Positions 18,001-35,300 of a stretch of DNA of 64,000 nt are shown here, piece by piece; within the stretch, counting starts at the first letter, position 1, and each line of letters begins with the position of its first letter. Origin of the DNA: Pristiophorus japonicus (taxonomy: Eukaryota); assembly GCF_044704955.1 (NCBI RefSeq), contig NC_091995.1, positions 53,382,001-53,446,000 of the forward strand, written 5' to 3'. Position numbers and translations under genes: made by a program. The notes beneath the pieces were generated by a model, which worked only from the letters and a program-made list of their open reading frames with translations, had not been told where the DNA came from and made no database searches.

Positions 18001-20244
18001 AGCACTCCCTCAGTACTGCCCCTCCGGAGTGCAGCGCTCCCTCATTACTACCCCTCCGACAGTGCAGCACTCCCAGTACTGCCCCTCCGACAGTACAGCG
18101 TTCCCTCAGTACTGTACCTCCGACAGCGCAGAATCGCTCAGTATTGCCCCTCCGACAGTACAGCGCTCCCTCAGTACTGTACCTCCGACAGTGCAGCAGT
18201 CCCTCAATACTACTGCTCCAACAGTGAAAATCTCTCCCAGTACTGCCCCTCCAAAAGTGCAGCGCTCCCTCAGTCCTACCCCTCCGACAGTGCAGCGCTC
18301 CCTCAGTCCTACCCCTCCGACAGTGCAGCGCTCCCTCAGTAGTGCCCCTCCGACAGTGCAGCACTCCCTCAGTACTGTCCCTCCGACAGTGCAGCACACC
18401 CTCAGTACTGCTCCTCTGACAGTGCAGCACTTCCCCACTACTGCCCCTCCGACAGTGCAATGCTCCCTCAGTACTGCCCCTCCAACAGCACAGCGCTCCC
18501 TCTGTAGTGCCCCTCCGCCATTGCAGCCCTCCCTCAGTACTGCCACTCCCACAGTGCAGCGCTCCCTCAGTACTACCCCTCCGCTAGTGCAGCGCTCCCT
18601 CAGTACTGCCTCTCCGACAGTGCAGCGCTCCCTCAGTACTGCTCCTCCTACAGTGCAACACTCCCTCAGTACTACCCATCCCAAAGTCGAGCACTCCCTC
18701 AGCATTGCCCCTTCTAAAGTCTTGCACTCCCTCAGTACTGCCCCTCCCAAAGTCGAGCGCTCCCTCAGTACTGCCCTGCTCACAATGCAACACTCCCTCA
18801 GTACTACCCATCCGAGAATGCAGTGCTCCCTCAGTACTGTCCCTCCGACAGTGCGGCGCTCCCTCAGTATTGCCCCTCCGACAGTGCAGCACACCCTGAG
18901 TACTGCCCCTCTGACAGTGCAGTGCTCCCTCAGTACTGACCCTCCCACAGTGCAGCACTCCCTCAGTACTACTCTTCCGACAATGCGGTGCTCCCTCTAC
19001 TGTCCCTCACACAGTGTGGCGCTCCCTCAGTACTGCCCCTCCGACAGTGCGGCGCTCCCTCGGTACTGCTGCTCCAAAATTGCAGCGCTCCCTCAGTACT
19101 GCCCCTCCGACATTGCAACTCTCCCTCAGCATTGAGCTTCCGACAGTATGGCGCTGCCTCAGTATTGCCCCTCCAACAGCGCAGCACTTCCACAGTCGTG
19201 CCCCTCCGGCAGTGTGGTGCTCCCTCAGTACTGCCCCTCCAACAGTGCAGCAGCCCTCATTACTTCCCCTCCGACAGTGCAGCACTCCCTCAGTACTGCC
19301 CCTCCGGAGTGCAGCGCTCCCTCATTACTACCCCTCCGACAGTGCAGCACTCCCAGTACTGCCCCTCCGACAGTACAGCGCTCCCTCAGTACTGTACCTC
19401 CGACAGTGCAGCAGTCCCTCAGTACTACTCCTCCAACAGTGCAAATCTCTCCCTGTACTGCCCTTCCCACAGTGCAGCACTCCCTCAGTACTACCCCTCC
19501 GACAGTGCAGCACTCCCTCGGTACTAACCCTCCGACAGTGCGGCGCTCCCTCAGTACTGCCCCTCCGACAGTGCAGCCCCTTCCTCACTACTGCCCCTAC
19601 GACAGTGCAGTGCTCCCTCAGCAGTGCCCCTCCGCCAGTGCAGCACTCGCTCAGTATTGCCTCTCCGACAGTGCAGCACTCCCTCAGTACTGCCCCTCCG
19701 ACAGTGCAGCACACCCTCAGTACTGCCCCTCCCACAATGCAGCACTCCCTCATTACTACCCCTCCGACAATGCAGCACTCCCTCAGTACTTACCCTCCCA
19801 CAATGCAGCACTCCCTCATTACTACCCCTCCGACAGTGCAGCACTCCCTCATTACTACCCCTCCGACAATGCAGCACTCCCTCAGTACTGTGCCTCCCAC
19901 AGTGCAGCACTCCCTCATTGCTACCCCTCCGACAGTGCAGCACTCCCTCAGTACTACCCCTCCGGAGTGCAGCGCTCCTTCATTACTACCCCTCCGACAG
20001 TGCAGCACTCCCAGTACTGCCCCTCCGACAGTACAGCGCTCCCTCAGTACTGTACCTCTGACAGCGCAGAATCCCTCACCACTGCACCTCCGACAGTGCA
20101 ACTCTCACAGAGTTGTGCCAATCGGATGGTGCAGCAATCCCTCACTATGGCCGCTCCGACTGTGTGGCGCTCCCTCAATACGGACCTTCCGACAGTGCAT
20201 TGCTCCCTCAGTACTGCCCCGCTGACAGTTCAGAATTCTTCAGT
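1..20244 (+). repeat. 33-bp satellite array, segment 1 (consensus CTCCCTCAGTACTGCCCCTCCGACAGTGCAGCA)
   Basis: Continuous head-to-tail 33-bp periodicity read directly. Translations repeat every 11 aa (LPQYCPSDSAA / SLSTAPPTVQH / PSVLPLRQCST). Recurrent variant monomers and occasional shortened monomers. The array runs off the left edge of the window. Confidence 0.98.
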
Positions 20245-20270
20245 CGGCCTTTTGGCTAAGATCATGCGTA
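20244..20270 (+). pseudogene. U2 snRNA 5' fragment (about nt 9-35, stem-loop I)
   Basis: TCGGCCTTTTGGCTAAGATCA (20244-20264) is a 21/21 match to vertebrate U2 nt 9-29 as recalled. It is followed by TGCGTA where U2 has AGTGTA. Confidence 0.92.
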
Positions 20271-20337
20271 ACTGACCTGACAGGGGAGTAACCATGACCC
20301 CAAAGTGGTTCTCCCTGGATCAGGAAGGTGGTTCTCC
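20271..20337 (+). pseudogene. U1 snRNA 5' fragment (about nt 3-51, stem-loop I) plus a second copy of loop I and the 3' stem arm
   Basis: ACTGACCTGACAGGGGAGTAACCATGACCCCAAAGTGGTTCTCCCTGG vs U1 ACTTACCTGGCAGGGGAGATACCATGATCACGAAGGTGGTTTTCCCAGG (about 39/49 by eye). GATCAGGAAGGTGGTTCTCC (20318-20337) vs U1 GATCACGAAGGTGGTTTTCC (18/20). Confidence 0.85.
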
Positions 20338-20340
20338 TAC

Positions 20341-20467
20341 GCTTTTTGGAAATAGTAGGTGGGTGGGGTGGCTTGACCCATCGACCTCCTCGGAGGTGTG
20401 TGGGGGGCCTGACCCATCCACCTCCATGGCACGAACCTGGTATTGCAGTACTTCCAGGAACGGTGCA
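20341..20467 (+). pseudogene. U2 snRNA 3' domain fragment: degenerate Sm site, two stem-loop III-like hairpins, stem-loop IV
   Basis: CTTTTTGGA (Sm-like, 20342-20350). Two related hairpins at ~20355-20389 and ~20392-20425 ending in ACCTCC. ACCTGGTATTGCAGTACTTCCAGGAACGGTGCA (20435-20467) is a 32/33 match to U2 stem-loop IV and the 3' end. Confidence 0.9.
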
Positions 20468-20495
20468 GTGGCTCCCGGCCTTTTGGCTAAGAGCA
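20468..20495 (+). pseudogene. second U2 snRNA 5' fragment (about nt 1-29)
   Basis: GTGGCTCCCGGCCTTTTGGCTAAGAGCA vs U2 ATCGCTTCTCGGCCTTTTGGCTAAGATCA. The last 20 nt match 19/20. Confidence 0.88.
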
Positions 20496-20592
20496 TTGGC
20501 GCAGAGTGATCCTTGATGTGTGCAAGGTGACCTCTGGCGTTTGTGATTTGACAAAGAATTGGAAAGATTGGCAACGAAAAATTAAAAAAAAA

Positions 20593-22693
20593 ACTGCCCC
20601 TTCAACAGTGCAGCGCTCCCTCAGTACTGCCCCTCTGACAGTGCAGCATTCCCTGAGTGCTGCCCCTCCGACAGTGCAGCACGCCCTCAGTACTGCCCCT
20701 CCCACAGTGCAGCGCTCCCTCAGTACTGCCCCTCCGACAGTACAGCGCTCCCTCAGTACTGTACCTCCGACAGCGCAGAATCCCTCAGTAGTGCCCCTCC
20801 GACAGTGCAGCACTCCCTCAGTACTGTCCCTCCGACAGTGCAGCACACCCTCAGTACTGCTCCTCTGACAGTGCAGCACTTCCCCACTACTGCCCCTCCG
20901 ACAGTGCAATGCTCCCTCAGTACTGCCCCTCCAACAGCACAGCGCTCCCTCTGTAGTGCCCCTCCGCCATTGCAGCCCTCCCTCAGTACTGCCACTCCCA
21001 CAGTGCAGCGCTCCCTCAGTACTACCCCTCCGCTAGTGCAGCGCTCCCTCAGTACTGCCTCTCCGACAGTGCAGCGCTCCCTCAGTACTGCTCCTCCTAC
21101 AGTGCAACACTCCCTCAGTACTACCCATCCCAAAGTCGAGCACTCCCTCAGCATTGCCCCTTCTAAAGTCTTGCACTCCCTCAGTACTGCCCCTCCCAAA
21201 GTCGAGCGCTCCCTCAGTACTGCCCTGCTCACAATGCAACACTCCCTCAGTACTACCCATCCGAGAATGCAGTGCTCCCTCAGTACTGTCCCTCCGACAG
21301 TGCGGCGCTCCCTCAGTATTGCCCCTCCGACAGTGCAGCACACCCTGAGTACTGCCCCTCTGACAGTGCAGTGCTCCCTCAGTACTGACCCTCCCACAGT
21401 GCAGCACTCCCTCAGTACTACTCTTCCGACAATGCGGTGCTCCCTCTACTGTCCCTCACACAGTGTGGCGCTCCCTCAGTACTGCCCCTCCGACAGTGCG
21501 GCGCTCCCTCGGTACTGCTGCTCCAAAATTGCAGCGCTCCCTCAGTACTGCCCCTCCGACATTGCAACTCTCCCTCAGCATTGAGCTTCCGACAGTATGG
21601 CGCTGCCTCAGTATTGCCCCTCCAACAGCGCAGCACTTCCACAGTCGTGCCCCTCCGGCAGTGTGGTGCTCCCTCAGTACTGCCCCTCCAACAGTGCAGC
21701 AGCCCTCATTACTTCCCCTCCGACAGTGCAGCACTCCCTCAGTACTGCCCCTCCGGAGTGCAGCGCTCCCTCATTACTACCCCTCCGACAGTGCAGCACT
21801 CCCAGTACTGCCCCTCCGACAGTACAGCGCTCCCTCAGTACTGTACCTCCGACAGTGCAGCAGTCCCTCAGTACTACTCCTCCAACAGTGCAAATCTCTC
21901 CCTGTACTGCCCTTCCCACAGTGCAGCACTCCCTCAGTACTACCCCTCCGACAGTGCAGCACTCCCTCGGTACTAACCCTCCGACAGTGCGGCGCTCCCT
22001 CAGTACTGCCCCTCCGACAGTGCAGCCCCTTCCTCACTACTGCCCCTACGACAGTGCAGTGCTCCCTCAGCAGTGCCCCTCCGCCAGTGCAGCACTCGCT
22101 CAGTATTGCCTCTCCGACAGTGCAGCACTCCCTCAGTACTGCCCCTCCGACAGTGCAGCACACCCTCAGTACTGCCCCTCCCACAATGCAGCACTCCCTC
22201 ATTACTACCCCTCCGACAATGCAGCACTCCCTCAGTACTTACCCTCCCACAATGCAGCACTCCCTCATTACTACCCCTCCGACAGTGCAGCACTCCCTCA
22301 TTACTACCCCTCCGACAATGCAGCACTCCCTCAGTACTGTGCCTCCCACAGTGCAGCACTCCCTCATTGCTACCCCTCCGACAGTGCAGCACTCCCTCAG
22401 TACTACCCCTCCGGAGTGCAGCGCTCCTTCATTACTACCCCTCCGACAGTGCAGCACTCCCAGTACTGCCCCTCCGACAGTACAGCGCTCCCTCAGTACT
22501 GTACCTCTGACAGCGCAGAATCCCTCACCACTGCACCTCCGACAGTGCAACTCTCACAGAGTTGTGCCAATCAGATGGTGCAGCAATCCCTCACTATGGC
22601 CGCTCCGACTGTGTGGCGCTCCCTCAATACGGACCTTCCGACAGTGCATTGCTCCCTCAGTACTGCCCCGCTGACAGTTCAGAATTCTTCAGT
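20593..22693 (+). repeat. 33-bp satellite array, segment 2
   Basis: Same monomer and orientation, lying between the two snRNA-derived inserts. Confidence 0.98.
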
Positions 22694-23041
22694 CGGCCTT
22701 TTGGCTAAGATCATGCGTAACTGACCTGACAGGGGAGTAACCATGACCCCAAAGTGGTTCTCCCTGGATCAGGAAGGTGGTTCTCCTACGCTTTTTGGAA
22801 ATAGTAGGTGGGTGGGGTGGCTTGACCCATCGACCTCCTCGGAGGTGTGTGGGGGGCCTGACCCATCCACCTCCATGGCACGAACCTGGTATTGCAGTAC
22901 TTCCAGGAACGGTGCAGTGGCTCCCGGCCTTTTGGCTAAGAGCATTGGCGCAGAGTGATCCTTGATGTGTGCAAGGTGACCTCTGGCGTTTGTGATTTGA
23001 CAAAGAATTGGAAAGATTGGCAACGAAAAATTAAAAAAAAA
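22694..23041 (+). mobile_element. snRNA-derived (U2/U1 mosaic) poly(A)-tailed retroposon, SINEU-like, copy 2
   Basis: No differences seen from 20245-20592 at offset +2449, including both flanks and the 10-A run. ORF translations at 20240/22689, 20294/22743, 20320/22769 and 20328/22777 are identical. Confidence 0.85.
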
Positions 23042-26000
23042 ACTGCCCCTTCAACAGTGCAGCGCTCCCTCAGTACTGCCCCTCTGACAGTGCAGCATTC
23101 CCTGAGTGCTGCCCCTCCGACAGTGCAGCACGCCCTCAGTACTGCCCCTCCCACAGTGCAGCGCTCCCTCAGTACTGCCCCTCCGACAGTACAGCGCTCC
23201 CTCAGTACTGTACCTCCGACAGCGCAGAATCCCTCAGTATTGCCCCTCCGACAGTACAGCGCTCCCTCAGTACTGTACCTCCGACAGTGCAGCAGTCCCT
23301 CAGTACTACTCCTCCAACAGTGCAAATCTCTCCCAGTACTGCCTTTCCACAGTGCGGCGCTCCCTCAGTACTGCCCCTCCGACAGTGCAGCATTCCCTCA
23401 GTACTGCCCCTCCGACAGTGCAGCGCTCCCTCACTATTGCTCCTCCGGCAGTGCGGCGCTCCCTCAGTACTGTCCTTCCAACAGTGCAGCACTCGCTCAG
23501 TATTGCCCCTCCGACAGTGCAGCACTCTCTTAGTGCTGTCCCTCGGCCAGCGCAGCACTCCCTCAATACTGTGCCTCTTACAGTGCAGCACTCCCTCAGT
23601 ACTGCCCCTCCGACAGTGCAGCACACCCTCAGTACTGCCCCTCCGACAGTGCAGCACTCCCTCAGTACTGCCCCTCCGACAGTGCAGCACACCCTCAGTA
23701 CTGCCCCTCCGGAGTGCAGCGCTCCCTCATTACTACCCCTCCGACAGTGCAGCACTCCCAGTACTGCCCCTCCGACAGTACAGCACACCCTCAGTACTGT
23801 ACCTCCGACAGCGCAGAATCCCTCAGTATTGCCCCTCCGACAGTACAGCGCTCCCTCAGTACTGTACCTCCGACAGTGCAGCAGTCCCTCAGTACTACTC
23901 CTCCAACAGTGCAAATCTCTCCCTGTACTGCCCTTCCCACAGTGCAGCACTCCCTCAGTACTACCCCTCCGACAGTGCAGCACTCCCTCGGTACTAACCA
24001 TCCGACAGTGCGGCGCTCCCTCAGTACTGCCCCTCCGACAGTGCAGCACTCCCTCACTACTGCTCCTACGACAGTGCAGTGCTCCCTCAGCAGTGCCCCT
24101 CCGCCAGTGCAGCACTCCCTCAGTACTACCCCACCCACAGTGCAGCGCACCCTCAGGACTACCCCTCCAACAGTGCAGCACTCCATCAGCAGTGCCTCTC
24201 CGCCAGTGCAGCACTCCCTCAGTACTGCCCCTCCGGCAGTGCAACTCTCCATCAGTACTGCCCCTTCGACAGTGCGGCGCTCCCTCAGTACTGCTCCTCC
24301 GACAGTGCACCATTCCCTCAGTACTGCCTCTTCGGCAGTGCAGCACTTCCTCAGTACTGCCCCTCAGACAGTGCAGCGCTCCCTCGCTACTGCCCCTCCG
24401 GCAGTGCGGCGCTCCCTCAGTACTGTCCTTCCAACAGTGCAGCACTCCCTCAGTACTGCCCCTCCGACAGTGCAGCACACCCTCAGTACTGCCCCTCCCA
24501 CAATGCAGCACTCCCTCATTACTACCTCTCCGACAGTGCAGCACACCCTCAGTACTGTCCCTCCCACAATGCAGCACTCCCTCATTACTATCCCTCCGAC
24601 AATGCAGCACTCCCTCAGTACTGTTCTTCCCACAATGCAGCACTCCCTCATTACTACCCCTCCGACAGTGCAGCACTCCCTCAGTACTGCCCCTCCGGAG
24701 TGCAGCGCTCCCTCATTACTACCCCTCCGACAGTGCAGCACTCCCAGTACTGCCCCTCCGACAGTACAGCGCTCCCTCAGTACTGTACCTTTGACAGCGC
24801 AGAATCCCTCAGTATTGCCCCTCCGACAGTACAGCGCTCCCTCAGTACTGTACCTCTGACAGTGCAGCAGTCCCTCAGTACTACTCCTCCAACAGTGCAA
24901 ATCTCTGCCAGTACTGCCCTTCCCACAGTGCAGCACTCCCTCAGTACTACCCCTCCGACAGTGCAGCACTCCCTCTGTACTAACCCTCCGACAGTGCGGC
25001 GCTCCCTCAGTACTGCCCCTCCGACAGTGCAGCCCCTTCCTCACTACTGCTCCTACGACAGTGCAGTGCTCCCTCAGCAGTGCCCCTCCGCCAGTGCAGC
25101 ACTCCCTCAGTACTGCCCCACCCACAGTGCAGCGCACCCTCAGTACTACCCCTCCAACAGTGCAGCACTCCATCAGCAGTGTCCCTCCGCCAGTGCAGCA
25201 CTCCCTCAGTACTGCCCCTCCAGCAGTGCAACTCTCCCTCAGCACTGCCCCTCCGACAGTGTAGCACTCCCTCAGTAGTGCCCCTCCGACAATGCAGCAC
25301 TCTCTTAGTGCTGTCCCTCGGCCAGCGCAGCACTCCCTCAATACTGCCCCTCCGACAGTGCAACGCTCCCTCATTACTACCCCACCGACAGTGTAGCGCT
25401 CCCTCAGTACTGCCCCTCCGACATTGCAGCACTCCCTCAATACTGCCCCTCCGACAGTGCAGCGCTTCCTCAGTACTGCCCCTCCGACAGTGCAGCGCTC
25501 CATCAGTACTACCCCTCCAACAGTGCAGCGTTCCCTCAGTACTGCCCCTCCGACAGTGCAGCGCTCCCTCAGTACTGCCCCTCCAACAGTGCAGCATTCC
25601 CTGAGTGCTGCCCCTCCGACAGTGCAGCGCTCCCTCAGTACTGCCCCTCCGACAGTGCAGCACTCCCTCAGTACTGCCCCTCCAACAATGCGGTGCTCCC
25701 TCAGTACTGCCCCTCTGACAGTGCAGTGCTCCCTCAGTATTTTCTCTCCGACAGTGTGGCACTCCCTCAGTACTGCCCCTCCGATAGTACAGCGATCCCT
25801 CAGTATTGCCCCTCCAACAGTGCAGCACTCCCTCCGTACTGCCCCTCCGACAGTTCAGCACTCCCTCCGTACTGTCCCTCCGACAGTTCAGCACTCCCTC
25901 CATACTGTCCCTCCGACAGCGCAGCACGACCTCAGTGCTGCCCCTCCGACAGTGTAGCGCTCCCTCAGTACTGCCGCTCCGACAATGCAGCGCTCCCTCT

Positions 26001-26563
26001 GTACTGACCCTTCAACAGTGCAGCACTCCCTCAGTACTGCCCCTCTGACTGTGCAGTGCTCCCTCAGTATTGATCCTCCGACAGTGTAGCGCACCCACAC
26101 TACTGCCCCTCTGACAGTGCAGCACTCCCTCAGTACTGCCGCCCCAAAAGTGCGGCGCTCCCTCAGTACTGCCCCTCCGACAGTGCAACTCTCCCTCAGC
26201 ATTGAGCTTCCGACAGTATGGCGCTGCCTCAGTGGTGCCCCTCCAACAACGCAGCACTCCCTCAGTACTGCCCCTCCGACAGCGCAGCAGCCTTCAGTAC
26301 TGCCTTCGGACAGTGCAGCGCTCCCTCATTACTACCCCTCCGACAGTGCAGCACTCCCTCAGTACTGCCCCTCCGGAGTGCAGCGCTCCCTCATTACTAC
26401 CCCTCCGACAGTGCAGCACTCCCAGTACTGCACCTCCGACAGTACAGCGCTCCCTCAGTACTGTACCTCCGACAGCGCAGAATCCCTCAGTATTGCCCCT
26501 CCGACAGTACAGCGCTCCCTCAGTACTGTACCTCCGACAGTGCAGCACTCTCTCGGTACTAAC
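23042..26563 (+). repeat. 33-bp satellite array, segment 3
   Basis: Same monomer and orientation up to the CR1 tail junction. Confidence 0.98.
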
Positions 26564-26628
26564 ATAGAAACATAGAAACATAGAAAATAGGTGCAGGAGC
26601 AGGCCATTCAGCCCTTCTTGCCTGCACC
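26561..26628 (-). repeat. CR1 3' terminal hairpin and (TCTATGTT)3 tail
   Basis: Plus strand (AACATAGA)x3 at 26561-26584. Inverted repeat GGTGCAGG (26590-26597) / CCTGCACC (26621-26628). This is the typical CR1 3' recognition structure. Confidence 0.9.
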
Positions 26629-29188
26629 GCCATTCAATGAGTTCATGGCTGAACATGAAACTTCAGTACCCGCTTCCTGCTTTCACGCCATAACCCTTGA
26701 TCCCCCAAGTAGTAAGGACTACATCTAACACCCTTTTGAATATATTTAGTGAATTGGCCTCAACTACTTTCTGTGGTAGAGAATTCCACAGGTTCACCAC
26801 TCTCTGGGTGAAGAAGTTTCTCCTTATCTCGGTCCTAAATGGCTTACCCCTTATCCTTAGACTGTGACCCCTGGGTCTGGACTTCCCCAACATTGGGAAC
26901 ATTCTTCCTGCATCCAACCTGTCCAAACCCGTCAGAATTTTAAACGTTTCTATGAGGTCCCCTCTCACTCTTCTGAACTCCAGTGAATACAAGCCCAGTT
27001 GATCCAGTCTTTCTTGATAGGTCAGTCCCACCATCCCGGGAATCAGTCTGGTGAATCTTCGCTGCACTCCCTCAATAGCAAGAATGTCCTTCCTCAAGTT
27101 AGGAGACAAAAACTGTACACAATACTCCAGGTGTGGCCTCACCAAGGCCCTGTACAACTGTAGCAACACCTCCCTGCCCCTGTACTCAAATCCCCTCGCT
27201 ATGAAGGCCAACATGCCATTTGCTTTCTTAACCGCCTGCTGTACCTGCATGCCAACCTTCAATGACTGATGTACCCAGGTCTCGTTGCACCTTCCCTTTT
27301 CCTAATCTGTCACCATTCAGATAATAGTCTGTCTCTCTGTTTTTACCACCAAAGTGGATAACCTCACATTTATCCACATTATACTTCATCTGCCACGCAT
27401 TTGCCCACTCACCTAACCTATCCAAGTCACTCTGCAGCCTCATAGCATCCTCCTGGCAGCTCACACTGCCACCCAACTTAGTGTCATCCGCAAATTTGGA
27501 GATACTACATTTAATCCCCTCGTCTAAATCATTAATGTACAATGTAAACAGCTGGGGCCCCAGCACAGAACCCTGCGGTACCCCACTAGTCACTGCCTGC
27601 CATTCCGAAAAGTACCCATTTACTCCTACTCTTTGCTTCCTGTCTGACAACCAATTCTCAATCCACGTCAGCACACTACCCCCAATCCCATGTGCTTTAA
27701 CTTTGCACATTAATCTCCTGTGTGGGACCTTGTCGAAAGCCTTCTGAAAGTCCAAATATACCACATCAACTGGTACTCCTTTGTCCACTTTATTGGAAAC
27801 ATCCTCAAAAAATTCCAGAAGATTTGTCAAGCATGATCTCCCTTTCACAAATCCATGCTGACTTGGACCTATCATGTCATCATTTTCCAAATGCGCTGCT
27901 ATGACATCCTTAATAATTGATTCCATCATTTTACCCACTACTGAGGTCAGGCTGACCGGTCTATAATTCCCTGCTTTCTCTCTCCCTCCTTTTTTAAAAA
28001 GTGGGGTTACATTGGCTACACTCCACTCGATAGGAACTGGTCCAGAGTCAATGGAATGTTGGAAAATGACTGTCAATGCATCCGCTATTTCCAAGGCCAC
28101 CTCCTTAAGTACTCTGGGATGCAGTCCATCAGGCCCTGGGGATTTATCGGCCTTCAATCCCATCAATTTCCCCAACACAATTTCCCGACTAATAAAGATT
28201 TCCCTCAGTTCCTCCTCCTTACTAGACCCTCTGACCCCTTTTATATCCGGAAGGTTGTTTGTGTCCTCCTTAGTGAATACTGAACCAAAGTACTTGTTCA
28301 ATTGGTCTGCCATTTCTTTGTTCCCCGTTATGACTTCCCCTGATTCTGACTGCAGGGGACCTACGTTTGTCTTTACTAACCTTTTTCTCTTTACATACCT
28401 GTAGAAACTTTTGCAATCCGCCTTAATGTTCCCTGCAAGCTTCTTCTCGTACTCCATTTTCCCTGCCCTAATCAAACCCTTTGTCCTCCTCTGCTGAGTT
28501 CTAAATTTCTCCCAGTCCCCAGGTTCGCTGCTATTTCTGGCCAATTTGTATGCCATTTCCTTGGCTTTAATACTATCCCTGATTTCCCTAGATAGCCACG
28601 GTTGAGCCACCTTCCCTTTTTTATTTTTACGCCGGACAGGAATGTACAATTGTTGTAATTCATCCATGCAGTCTCTAAATGTCTGCCATTGCCCATCCAC
28701 AGTCAACCCCTTAAGTATCATTAGCCAATCTATCTTAGCCAATTCATGCCTCATACCTTCAAAGTTACCCTTCTTTAAGTTCTGGACCATGGTCTCTGAA
28801 TGAACTGTTTCATTCTCCATCCTAATGCAGAATTCCACCATATTATGGTCACTCTTCCCCAAGGGGCCTCGCACAATGAGATTGCTAATTAATCCTCTCT
28901 CATTACACAACACCCAGTCTAAGATGGCCTCCCCCCTGGTTGGTTCCTCGACATATTGGTCTAGAAAACCATCCCTTATGCACTCCAGGAAATCCTCCTC
29001 CACCGTATTGCTTCCAGTTCGGCTAGCCCAATCTATGTGCATATTAAAGTCACCCATTATAACTGCTGCACCTTTATTGCATGCACTCCTAATTTCCTGT
29101 TTGATGCCCTCCCCAACATCACTACTACTGTTTGGAGGTCTGTACACAACTCCCACTAACGATTTTTGCCCTTTCGTGTTCTGCAGCT
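26564..29188 (-). mobile_element. CR1-clade LINE (non-LTR retrotransposon), 5'-truncated, ~2.6 kb
   Basis: Abrupt switch to AT-richer unique sequence. ORF2 with endonuclease and RT motifs, ~100-bp 3' UTR with a hairpin and an octamer-repeat tail. CTAAC occurs at both junctions (26559-26563 and 29189-29193), and the satellite monomer ...CTCGGTACTAACCCTCCGAC... resumes in phase. Confidence 0.96.
26663..29188 (-). pseudogene. CR1 ORF2 (partial APE endonuclease + reverse transcriptase), 5'-truncated, one frameshift near 27274
   Basis: EN motifs VGVVYRPP, IMGDFN, LDWVL, SDHNMV. RT motifs KSPGPDG, NYRPVSLTSVVGK, QHGF, YLDFQKAFDKVPH, GVPQGSVLGP, FADDTK. The C-terminus (LYRALVRPHLEYC...RGHSL...FFTQRVVNLWNSLP) continues in another frame (ORF 26663..27262) to TGA at 26663-26665. 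Confidence 0.95.
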
Positions 29189-32100
29189 CTAACCCTCCGA
29201 CAGTGCGGCGCTCCCTCAGTACTGCCCCTCCGACAGTGCAGCATTCCCTCAGTACTGCCCCTCCGACAGTGCAGCACATCCTCAGTACTGCCCCTCAGAC
29301 AGTACAGCGCTCCCTCACTACTGCCCCTCCGGCAGTGCGGCGCTCCCTCAGTACTGTCCTTCCAACAGTGCAGCACTCACTCAGTATTGCCCCTCCGACA
29401 GTGCAGCAACTCCTCAGATCTTCCCCTCAGACAGTGCAGCACTCCCTCAGTACTGCCCCTTCGACAGTGCAGCACTCTCTTAGTGCTGTCCCTCGGCCAG
29501 CGCAGCACTCCCTCAATACTGTGCCTCTTACAGTGCAGCACTCCCTCAGTACTGCCCCTCCGACAGTGCAGCACACCCTCAGTACTACCCCTCCGACAGT
29601 GCAGCACACCCTCAGTACTGCCCCTCCGACAGTGCAGCACTCCCTCAGTACTGCCCCTCCGACAGTGCAGCACTCCCTCAGTACTGCCCCTCCGACAGTG
29701 TAGCGCTCCCTCTGTAGTGCGCCTCCGACAGTGCAGCGCTCCCTCAGTACTGCCTCTCCAACAGTGCAGCGCTCCCTCAGTACTGCCCCTCCGACAGTGC
29801 AGTGCTCCGTCAGTACTACCCCTACGACAGTGCAGCACTCCCTCAGTACTGTCCCTCCCACAATGCAGCACTCCCTCAGTACTGCCCCTCCGACAGTGCA
29901 GCACTCCGTCAGTACTACCCCTCCGACAGTGCAGCGCTTTCTCAGTACTGCCCCTCCGACAGTGCAGTGCTCCCTCAGTACTGCCGCTCCGACAGTGCAG
30001 CTCTCCATCAGTACTGCCCCTCCAACAGCGTAGCGCTCCCTCAGTCGTGCCCTTCCGCCAGTCCAGCACTCCCTCACTACTGCCCCTCCGACAGTGCAAC
30101 TCTCACAGAGTTGTGCCAATCGGATGGTGCAGCACTCCCTCACTATGGCCGCTCCGACTGTGTGGCGCTCCCTCAATACGGACCTTCTGACAGTGCATTG
30201 CTCCCTCAGTACTGCCCCGCTGACAGTTCAGAATTCCTCAGCACTGCCCCTTCAACAGTGCAGCGCTCCCTCAGTACTGCCCCTCTGACAGTGCAGCATT
30301 CCCTGAGTGCTGCCCCTCCGACAGTGCAGCACGCCCTCAGTACTGCCCCTCCCACAGTGCAGCACTCCCTCAGTATTGTCCCTCCCACAGTGCAGCGCTC
30401 CCTCAGTACTGCCCCTCTGACAGTGCAGCACTCCCTCATTACTGCCCCTCTGACAGTGCAGCACTCCCTCATTACTGCCCCTCTGACAGTGCAGCACTCC
30501 CTCAGTACTGCCGCTCCAAAAGTGCGGCGCTCCCTCAGTACTGCCCCTCCGACAGTGCAACTCTCCCTCAGCATTGAGCTTCCGACAGCATGGCGCTGCC
30601 TCAGTATTGCCCCTCCGACAGCGCAGCACTTCCTCAGTCGTGCCCCTCCGGCAGTGTGGTGCTCCCTCAGTACTGCACCTCCAACAGTGCAGCAGCCCTC
30701 AGTACTGCCTTCGGACAGTGCAGTGCTCCCTCATTACTTCCCCTCCGACAGTGCAGCACTCCCTCAGTACTGCCCCTCCGACAGTGCAGCACATCCTCAG
30801 TACTGCCCCTCAGATAGTGCAGCGCTCCCTCACTACTGCCCCTCCGGCAGTGCGGCGCTCCTTCAGTACTGTCCTTCCAACAGTGTAGCACTCCCTCAGT
30901 ACTGCCCCTTCGACAGTGCAGCACTCTCTTAGTGCTGTCCCTCGGCCAGCGCAGCACTCCCTCAATACTGTGCCTCTTACAGTGCAGCACTCCCTCAGTA
31001 CTGCCCCTCCGACAGTGCAGCACACCCTCAGTACTGCCCCTCCGACAGTGCAGCGCTCTCTCTGTAGTGCACCTCCGCCAGTGCAGCGCTCCCTCAGTAC
31101 TACCCCTCCGACAGTGCAGCGCTCCCTCAGTACTGCCTCTCCGACAGTACAGTGCTCCCTCAGTCCTGCCCTCCAACAGTGCAGCGCTCCCTCAGTACTA
31201 CCCCTCCAACAGTGCAGCGCTCCCTCAGAACTGCCCCTCCTACACTGCAACACTCCCTCAGTACTACCCATCCCAAAGTCTAACACTCCCTCAGTATTGC
31301 CCCTCCCAAAGTCTAGCTCTCCCTCACCACTGCCCCTCCAGCAGTGCGGCGCTCCCTCAGTACTGTCCTTCCAACAGTGCAGCACTCCCTCAGTACTGCC
31401 TCTCCGACAGTGCAGCACACCCTCAGTACTGCCCCTCCGACAGTGCAGCACTCCCTCAGTACTGCCCCTCCGACAGTGCAGCGCTTCCTCACTACTGCCC
31501 CTCTGACAGTGCAGTGCTCCCTCAATACTGCCCCACCAACAGCACAGCGCTCCCTCTGTAGTGCGCCTCCGCCAGTGCAGCACTCCCTCAGTACTGTCCC
31601 TCCCACAGTGCAGCGCTCCCTCAGTACTGCCTCTCCAACAGTGCAGCGCTCCCTCAGTACTGCCCCTCCAATAGTGCAACGCTCCCTCAGAACTGCCCCT
31701 CCTACAGTGCAACACTCCCTCAGTACTACTCATCCCAAAGTCTAGCACTCCCTCAGTATTGCCCCTCCCAAAGTCTAGCACTCCCTCAGTACTGCCCCTC
31801 CCAATGTCGAGCGCTCCCTCAGTACTGCCCCTCCGGCAGTGTGGTGCTCCCTCAGTACTGCCCCTCCAACAGTGCAGCAGCCCTCAGTACTGCCTTCGGA
31901 CAGTGCAGTGCTCCCTCATTACTACCTCTCCGACAATGGAGCGCTCCCTCATTACTACCACTCCGACAGTGCAGCACTCCCTCAGTACTGCCCCTCCGGA
32001 GTGCAGCGCTCCCTCATTATTACCCCTACGACAGTACAGCACTCCCTCAGTACTGTACCTCCGACAGTGCAGCAGTCCCTCAGTACTACTCATTCAACAG

Positions 32101-32386: not shown

Positions 32387-35300
32387 CCCTCCGACAGTGC
32401 AGCACGCCCTCAGTACTGCCCCTCAGACAGTGCACCACTCCTTCAGGACTGTCCCTCCGACAGTGTAGCATTCCCTCCGTACTGTCCCTCCGACAGTGCA
32501 GCACTCCTTTAGTGCTGTCCCTCGGCCAGCGCAGCACTCCCTCAGTACTGCCCCTCCGACAGTGCAGCAATCCCTCAATACTGCCCCTCCGACAGTGCAG
32601 CGCTTCCTCAGTACTGCCCCTCCGACAGTGCAGCGCTCCATCAGTACTACCCCTCCAACAGTGCAGCGTTCCCTCAGTACTGTCCCTCCGACAGTGCAGC
32701 GCTCCCTCAGTACTGCCCCTCCAACAGTGCAGCATTCCCTGAGTGCTGCCCCTCCGACAGTGCAGCGCTCCCTCAGTACTGACCCTCCGACAGTGCAGCA
32801 CTCCCTCAGTACTGCCCCTCCAACAATGCGGTGCTCCCTCAGTACTGCCCCTCTGACAGTGCAGTGCTCCCTCAGTATTTTCCCTCCGACAGTGTGGCAC
32901 TCCCTCAGTACTGCCCCTCCGATAGTACGGCGATCCCTCAGTATTGCCCCTTCAACAGTGCAGCACTCCCTCCGTACTGCCCCTCCGACAGTTCAGCACT
33001 CCCTCCGTACTGTCCCTCCGACAGTTCAGCACTCCCTCCGTACTGTCCCTCCGACAGCGCAGCACTCCCTCAGTACTGCCCCTCTGGCTGTGCAGTGCTC
33101 CCTCAGTATTGATCCTCCGACAGTGTAGCGCACCCACACCACTGCCCCTCCGACAGTGCAGCAATCCCTCAGTACTGCCACTCCGACAGTGCAGCGCTCC
33201 CTCAGTATTGCCACTCCGACAGTGCAGCGCTCCCTCAGTACTGCTCCTCTGACAGTGCAAGGCTCCCTCCAACAGTGCAACTCTCTCTCAGTACTACGCC
33301 TCCAACAGTGCAGCGCTCCCTCAGTACTGCCCCTCCGACAGTGCAGCACTCCCTCAGTACTGCCCCTCCGACAGTGCAGCGCTCCCTCAGTACTGGTCCT
33401 CTGACAGTGCAAGGCTCCCTCCAACAGTGCAACTCTCTCTCAGTACTACGCCTCCATCAGTGCAGCGCTCCCTCAGTGCTGCCTCACCGACAGTGCAGTG
33501 CTCCCTCAGTACTGCCGCTCCGTCAGTGCAGCTCTCCATCAGTACTGCCCCTCCAGCAGCGTAGCGCTCCCTCAGTAGTGCCCTTCCGCTAGTCCAGCAG
33601 TCTCTCACTACTGCCCATCCGACAGTGCAACTCTCAGAGTTGTGCCAATCGGATGGTGCAGCACTCCCTCACTATGGCCGCTCCGACTGTGTGGCGCTCC
33701 CTCAATACTGACCTTCCGACAGTGCAGCGCTCCCTCAGCACTGCCCCGCTGACAGTGCAGAATTCCTCAGTACTGCCCCCCAACAGTGCAGCGCTCCCTC
33801 AGTACTGCCCCTCTGACAGTGCAGCATTCCCTGAGTGCTGCCCCTCCGACAGTTCAGCACGCCCTCAGTACTGCCCCTCCCACAGTGCAGCACTCCCTCA
33901 GTACTACTCTTCCAACAATGCGGTGCACCCTCAGTACTTACCCTCCCACAGTGCGGCGCTCCCTCAGTACTGCTCCTCCGACAGTGCGGCGCTCCCTCAG
34001 TACTGCCCCTGTGACAGTGCAGCACTCCCTCATTACAGCCCCTCCAACAGTGCAGCGCTCCCTCAGTACTGCCGCTCCAAAAGTGCGGCGCTCTCTCAGT
34101 ACTGCCCCTCCAACAGCACAGCGCTCCCTCAGTACTGCCCCTCGCCAGTGCAGCACTCCCTCAGTACTGCCCCTCCCACAGTGCAGCACTCCCTCAGTAC
34201 TACCCCTCCGACAGTGCAGTGCTCTTTCAGTACTGCCTCTCCGACAGTGCAACACTCCCTCAGTACCACCCATCCCAAAGTCTAGCACTCCCTCAGTACT
34301 GCCCCTCCCAAAGTCTAGCACTCCCTCAGTATTGCCCCTCCCAAAGTCTAGCACTCCCTCAGTACTGCCCCTCCCAAAGTCGAGCGCTCCCTCAGCACTG
34401 CCCTGCTCACAGTGCAACACTGCCCCAGTACTACCCATCCGAGAATGCAGTGCTCCCTCAGTACTGTCCCTCCGACAGTGCGCCGCTCCCTCAGTATTGC
34501 CCCTCCGACAGTGCAGCACTCCCTCAGTACTGCACCTCCGACAGTGCGGCGCTCCCTCAGTACGGGTCCTCTGACAGTGCAAGGCTCCCTCCAACAGTGC
34601 AACTCTCTCTCAGTACTACGCCTCCAACAGTGCAGCACTCCCTCAGTACTGTCCCTCCGACACTGCAGCGCTCCCTCAGTACTGACCCTCCGACAGTGCA
34701 GCACTCCGTCAGTACTACCCCTCCGACAGTGCAGCGCTTTCTCAGTACTGCCCCTCCGACAGTGCAGTGCTCCCTCAGTACTGCCGCTCCGACAGTGCAG
34801 CTCTCCATCAGTACTGCCCCTCCAACAGCGTAGCGCTCCCTCAGTCGTGCCCTTCCGCCAGTCCAGCACTCCCTCACTACTGCCCCTCCGACAGTGCAAC
34901 TCTCACAGAGTTGTGCCAATCGGATGGTGCAGCACTCCCTCACTATGGCCGCTCCGACTGTGTGGCGCTCCCTCAATACGGACCTTCCGACAGTGCATTG
35001 CTCCCTCAGTACTGCCCCGCTGACAGTTCAGAATTCCTCAGCACTGCCCCTTCAACAGTGCAGCGCTCCCTCAGTACTGCCCCTCTGACAGTGCAGCATT
35101 CCCTGAGTGCTGCCCCTCCGACAGTGCAGCACGCCCTCAGTGCTGCCCCTCCCACAGTGCAGCACTCCCTCAGTACTGCCCCTCCGACAGTGCAGCGCTT
35201 CCTCACTACTGCCCCTCTGACAGTGCAGTGCTCCCTCAATACTGCCCCACCAACAGCACAGCGCTCCCTCTGTAGTGCGCCTCCGCCAGTGCAGCACTCC

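Follow-up and report, generated by a model that had tools for sequence, protein, structure and literature searches.

A candidate SINEU-like retroposon built as a mosaic of U1 and U2 snRNA pieces in satellite DNA of Pristiophorus japonicus

The segment at 20245–20592 (plus strand) of the window, by which we mean the whole 64,000-nucleotide stretch of Pristiophorus japonicus DNA analysed here, is a retroposed insert, as seen from its empty-site paralogues, its poly(A) and its clean boundaries. We consider it probable that this stretch represents one copy of a non-autonomous, non-coding elasmobranch retroposon of SINEU-like design, whose RNA had been assembled from snRNA pieces before it was inserted. 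The element is short (348 bp), non-coding and poly(A)-ended, the features by which a retroposon is recognised. SINEU is an established class and, judged from the sequence, an elasmobranch snRNA mosaic of this design is a new variant of it.

The insert and its satellite target

The entire 64-kb window consists of a C-rich 33-bp satellite (TRF and base composition), with the consensus CTCCCTCAGTACTGCCCCTCCGACAGTGCAGCG. A k-mer scan revealed three non-satellite stretches only, namely two copies of the insert and a CR1 LINE. The satellite (1–64000) has a strong strand asymmetry, with a GC skew of about -0.4, and contains 908 CAGTACTG palindromes. Its paralogous blocks are 94–99% identical and occur at irregular long-range spacing (for example at 30082, 34882, 41385 and 44274).

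Uninterrupted paralogues of the satellite block provide the empty site of the 348-bp insert and, because they are near-identical to the host satellite, both ends of the insertion can be placed at single-nucleotide resolution. The closest is the block at 34882–35191, with 98.7% identity to both flanks, in which the empty site (AATTCCTCAG C A...) lies at 35032–35043 (no strand assigned); further paralogues are found at 30082, 41385 and 44274. When aligned, the empty sites read ...GTTCAGAATTCCTCAG[C/T]ACTGCCCCTTCAAC... without a break. Together with the non-satellite k-mer stretch, these paralogues bear out the start at 20245 and the 348-bp extent given in the preliminary description, each end carrying an uncertainty of about 1 nt, in that T20244 and A20593 may belong to the target or to the element.

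Measured against the empty-site paralogues, the insertion at CAGY/ACTG (the slash marks the insertion point) is blunt, with no duplication or deletion of the target, and lies midway within a short palindrome, CAGYACTG. The L1-type hallmarks of a target-site duplication and a T-rich nick site are both absent from CAGY/ACTG in this comparison. An imperfect 20-bp target duplication (16/21) was considered and rejected, as the paralogues show only neighbouring satellite units at these positions. Rfam alignment also placed U2 nt 1–9 at 20234–20243 (AATTCTTCAG); this match is a coincidence, the paralogues showing satellite bases. The 5' flank, AATTCTTCAG(T) at 20234–20244 (no strand assigned), is thus satellite and not U2 nt 1–9, with paralogues that read AATTCCTCAG[C/T]ACTG unbroken, and the element therefore starts at about U2 nt 10. 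The 3' flank is satellite as well (ACTGCCCC...), not U2 from nt 39 onward.

A second, identical copy is located at 22694–23041 on the plus strand (100% BLAST match), and the exact match of this twin reaches 22683–23049. It is offset by 2449 and lies within a 2.4-kb block that has been duplicated in tandem (2449 bp; 18377–20797 versus 20826–23246, two mismatches), so that the two copies represent a single insertion event rather than two. Neither BLAST nor the k-mer scan revealed a second independent insertion of the element in the 64-kb window. The 2.4-kb duplication within the satellite suggests that blocks of the array were amplified recently, although it could also be an artefact of assembly.

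The CR1 LINE (26561–29193, minus strand) is 5'-truncated and carries a 3' repeat of the (AACATAGA)n type. Its EN-RT frame is open over 683 aa (27228–29279; Pfam RVT_1, 5e-34), and its best named relatives come from Hypanus, Pristiophorus, Mobula, Scyliorhinus and Chiloscyllium, with up to 78% identity; all of these are elasmobranchs, which marks the host as an elasmobranch too. We considered this CR1 as the partner LINE of the insert. It ends in the octamer repeat without poly(A) and has no sequence in common with the element by BLAST, and it is therefore not a candidate partner; no Tx1 LINE was found in the window. The 3' junction of the CR1 lies at CAGTACT/G, 2–3 nt from the satellite phase used by the snRNA retroposon, with a loss of about 2–3 nt of target. 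This proximity involves two events and may be due to chance (roughly 1 in 5).

Module architecture, tail and copy number

The preliminary description had listed a 5' U2 piece, a 5' U1 piece, a U1 repeat, a U2 3' half, a second 5' U2 piece, a tail and poly(A). All of these were recovered by Rfam, a repeat search and BLAST, nearly where it had placed them.

The element opens with a U2 5' module (20245–20270, plus strand) covering about U2 nt 10–35 in the Rfam alignment, including stem-loop I (GGCC-UUUU-GGCU); the first 20 nt (20245–20264) are identical, 20/20, to the Rfam U2 consensus at about 10–29. It is followed by the U1 5' end and stem-loop I (20271–20318, plus strand; U1 model 1/3–48 in Rfam), which is decayed and reads ACUGACCUG in place of the Rfam consensus ACUUACCUG. 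A partial repeat of the loop and 3' strand of U1 stem-loop I then occupies 20319–20340 (plus strand), and is seen as a 13-nt direct repeat (D2; 20302–20314 versus 20325–20337, 92%). Next comes a U2 3' half (20341–20467, plus strand; Rfam alignment and direct repeat D1) comprising an Sm-like site (CUUUUUGG), a doubled SL III-like segment, SL IV and the U2 3' terminus. The doubling of the SL III-like segment corresponds to D1 (20366–20389 versus 20402–20425, 88%). Both internal duplications had been seen in the preliminary description and are confirmed by the repeat search.

Downstream, a 3-nt linker, GTG, leads into a second U2 5' module (20468–20495, plus strand), which covers about U2 nt 4–29 as judged from Rfam and from its likeness to module 1. 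Scanning 20470–20600 alone placed U2 model positions 7–26 at 20473–20492, and the two U2 5' modules share 95% identity over 21 nt. Both stop before U2 nt 38, the first at about 35 and the second at about 29. Two of the junctions involve snRNA ends. At 20467/20468 the natural U2 3' end is joined via GTG to about nt 4 of the U2 5' piece and, further upstream, U1 nt 1–3 are joined to U2 nt ~35, which makes another 5'-end junction.

Covariance models agree with these assignments. In the local E-value scan, U2 (RF00004) scores 39.8 bits over 20234–20473 (E 1.4e-6; gathering score 46), and U1 model positions 1–48 align to 20269–20318 with 20.6 bits (E 4.4e-3) in the local Rfam scan, or 21 bits (E 4.9e-4) when 20262–20345 is scanned alone. 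The U1 and U2 parentage suggested earlier is thus upheld at scores that both lie under gathering, as is to be expected of fragments; at the gathering threshold, Rfam reports no RNA family in the whole window. As a U2 gene, the segment falls under the RF00004 gathering score, with model nt ~36–95 replaced by U1-derived sequence; 20245–20467 as a whole resembles U2 in which nt ~36–95 have been swapped for U1 nt 1–48. The divergence of the modules follows no simple 3'-to-5' gradient, with SL IV near consensus and U1 decayed. Part of the snRNA stem-loop structure survives, with U2 SL I, U1 SL I and SL IV able to fold and a z of -3.0 for the fold of 20244–20433. The CpG observed/expected ratio in the element is 0.47.

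The remainder of the element is a unique 88-nt tail (20496–20583, plus strand), to which no candidate origin was matched, and an A-run of 10 forming the poly(A) tail (20584–20593, plus strand, from the sequence and the paralogue alignment; the last A may be that of the target). ATTAAA at 20581–20586 runs into the A-run. The tail matched no Rfam family at E<=10 beyond chance-level matches, and on the same scan a small-RNA source, U6-like, U4-like or otherwise, was dropped. By BLAST it has no match elsewhere in the window, including the CR1, the only LINE compared. The tail had also been described as structured; its z of -0.68 shows no significant fold. Runs of T4/T5 occur at 20250, 20343 and 20481, and a search of the element for a B box found none.

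Translation of the stop-free minus-strand frame at 20243–20431 yielded no homologous proteins. Its two matches, to the repetitive ENA protein P0121 and weakly to Carcharodon (E 5e-4), were taken as chance. P0121 (1821 aa, predicted) consists of about 26 repeats of 67 aa and matches the antisense frame of the element with E 2.5e-37. The identity is 50% over 20 aa per repeat, and the low E-value arises because one weak 20-aa match recurs, repeats inflating HMMER scores.

Element words were found in seven sequencing runs from one organism in two studies, and three small runs of one study (109–165 M letters each) contain 46–54% of the sampled element words. This share suggests more than the present locus, being hard to square with two copies unless the libraries are enriched or are RNA. 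Metagenome pattern scans for the U2–U1 junction architecture and for a 22-nt tail motif gave no match. On balance, the element most likely belongs to a family.

Formation of the mosaic and competing explanations

The A-run, the ATTAAA motif and the clean ends point to a polyadenylated template that was reverse-transcribed at a nick. The enzyme would most likely be that of a LINE of the L1/Tx1 group, and the mover is probably a poly(A)-using LINE of the Tx1 type; the absence of a target-site duplication, unusual for an L1-type insertion, speaks against this reading, although blunt insertions have been reported for SINEU-2 (PMC4494074). Transcription was probably by pol II or by read-through, since the internal T4/T5 runs would stop pol III and a B box is absent.

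The mosaic itself appears to have been built up over several steps ahead of the present insertion. Its oldest core may have been a short U2 5' head joined to the tail, as in the crocodilian SINEU-1J. The U2 3' half would then have been gained when the reverse transcriptase, on reaching the 5' end of the core RNA, jumped end to end onto the 3' end of U2 snRNA, and the 20467/20468 junction points to such a jump, of which it would be the signature (the mechanism is discussed in PMC4494074). Further jumps or recombination may have added U1 and the outer U2 head, while slippage could have doubled U1 SL I and U2 SL III. The stretch of U1 that pairs with the 5' splice site is decayed and partial duplications are present, yet the boundaries show no flaw and the A-run is uninterrupted, a combination that points to a source RNA that had become a degenerate mosaic beforehand. 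We infer that this RNA belonged to a replicating, non-functional lineage rather than being a fresh copy of working snRNAs, decay being scored against the Rfam consensus. The several rounds of formation envisaged in the preliminary description explain the junctions most economically. The present copy would itself be inert.

These observations bear differently on a one-off origin, in which a LINE reverse transcriptase began on a polyadenylated tail RNA and then switched template to U2 and U1 four or five times, without any family being formed. Such an origin would account for the single insertion event visible in 64 kb, and the joining of a U2 3' end to a U2 5' piece is what a template jump produces; snRNA template-switch chimeras are moreover well documented (PMC4494074). 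Five modules, two partial duplications and a decayed U1 would, however, call for templates that were degenerate beforehand, and small runs from other individuals contain half of the element words. Known chimeras have two parts, rarely three. We therefore regard a single chimeric event as improbable. More remote still is the idea that the stretch is a functional variant snRNA gene, or that snRNA genes were rearranged at the DNA level and became trapped in the satellite. Partly kept stem-loops and the z of -3.0 for 20244–20433 are what such a gene would predict, but it would have to carry a poly(A) tail, lie inside satellite with no upstream promoter element and score under gathering with both Rfam models, and the parts needed for function, the 5' end of U1 and the U2 region that pairs with the branch point, are mutated or missing. 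We give this explanation hardly any credence.

A further possibility is a variant of the preferred reading rather than its opposite: the element may be a non-autonomous derivative or passenger of a U2-targeting LINE of the Tx1/Keno type. The U2 5' heads would then be target flank, derived from a master copy inserted between U2 nt 38 and 39 and transcribed from the U2 promoter, and the element would have grown by nested insertion, not template jumps. Keno and Utopia have their 3' junction at U2 38/39, before which both U2 5' modules end, and crocodilian Tx1-Mar LINEs, some of them with U2 heads, cluster with Keno. At the insertion point, CTCAGTA/CTG compared with TGTAGTA/TCTGTTCTT gives the best one-gap match (9/15) among all phases of the 33-bp unit, a post hoc result at one locus with a chance of roughly 1 in 33; without a gap the similarity to the target is weak (7/16). 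The likeness of AGTA/CTG to the U2 target GTAGTA/TCTG is, as a comparison of sequences, a weak lead. Against this possibility, the 3' flank is satellite and not U2, and nested insertion cannot join a U2 3' end to a U2 5' piece. A derivative of this kind consequently seems unlikely, and we retain as the preferred reading a retroposon whose RNA had become an snRNA mosaic before it was inserted.

Relation to known elements and implications

The likeness to SINEU put forward in the preliminary description stands, in that the short U2 5' head, the U1 head, the internal partial duplications, the unique 3' region and the poly(A) match the published architecture (PMC4494074). SINEU-1, and especially its complex subfamilies C, H, G and D, likewise has a short U2 5' head before a unique 3' region with poly(A). 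It also shares the stacking of U1 and U2 pieces at the 5' side, partial duplications in the U1 part, internal oligo-T runs and a length below 500 bp. Stacked additions of this SINEU-1 pattern are seen here in the order U2, U1, partial U1, U2 3' half, U2 and tail, in one copy. Only the shark element is described with a long U2 3' half, from the Sm site to the 3' end, in its middle. The targets and hosts also differ, with Mariner-N4_AMi in crocodilians for SINEU-1 and satellite in an elasmobranch here, the two elements being likened by published description. The simplest crocodilian subfamily, SINEU-1J, has the ‘U2 head + tail’ design (PMC4494074).

SINEU-2 consists of a 5' U1 piece joined to a 3' U2 piece, and a joining of U1 to U2 is likewise found in the shark element. 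SINEU-3 is a U2 that has lost an internal segment (its first 32 bp are followed by 83 bp from further along), and segment 20245–20467 is comparable to it. Compared with both, the shark element has more modules, adding an extra U2 head and the 88-nt unrelated tail. Blunt insertions have been reported for SINEU-2 (PMC4494074), and Kojima likewise took the internal T runs of SINEU as an argument against pol III (PMC4494074). Crocodilian SINEU and Keno-related Tx1 LINEs also have targets in common, and some of these LINEs are U2-headed, for example Tx1-11_Crp (PMC4494074).

Two other systems offer partial parallels. In chimeras of the U6-L1 type, as summarised in PMC4494074 (citing Buzdin 2002 and Garcia-Perez 2007), an snRNA piece is likewise joined by its natural 3' end to the 5' end of another retro-copied RNA, with poly(A). 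In that summary these are single events with two parts, L1-type target duplications and T-rich nick sites, whereas the shark element has five parts, no duplication and a site that is not T-rich. Keno (Tx1 clade) and Utopia insert into U2 at 38/39, within GTAGTA/TCTG, and have variable 5' junctions (PMC4640811). This Tx1-type association with the first ~30–38 nt of U2 is similar to the U2 heads of the shark element which, unlike Keno and Utopia, has no ORF and no downstream U2 flank.

SINEU has been detected in crocodilians only, and none was found outside them (Kojima 2015, PMC4494074). We found no report of a SINEU-type element in cartilaginous fish in the open literature that we searched. 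Crocodilians and sharks are separated by an estimated 450 million years or so. To our knowledge, SINEU is the sole class of SINEs with heads from snRNAs transcribed by pol II. A second occurrence would show that the SINEU design arises repeatedly, and would offer another system for studying the transcription of such elements and the identity of the LINE that mobilises them. The present locus contributes an insertion that can be read to the base as blunt, free of duplication and centred on a palindrome, a resolution that other copies may lack.

Put more broadly, and tentatively, elasmobranchs may possess their own family of snRNA-mosaic retroposons, independent of crocodilian SINEU and moved by a Keno-like Tx1 LINE that recognises AGTA/(T)CTG, with the U2 heads and the stacking of modules as by-products of target choice and template jumps. 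If this is true, U2-targeting LINEs would repeatedly give rise to snRNA-headed SINEs that do not depend on pol III, and crocodilians would be no special case.
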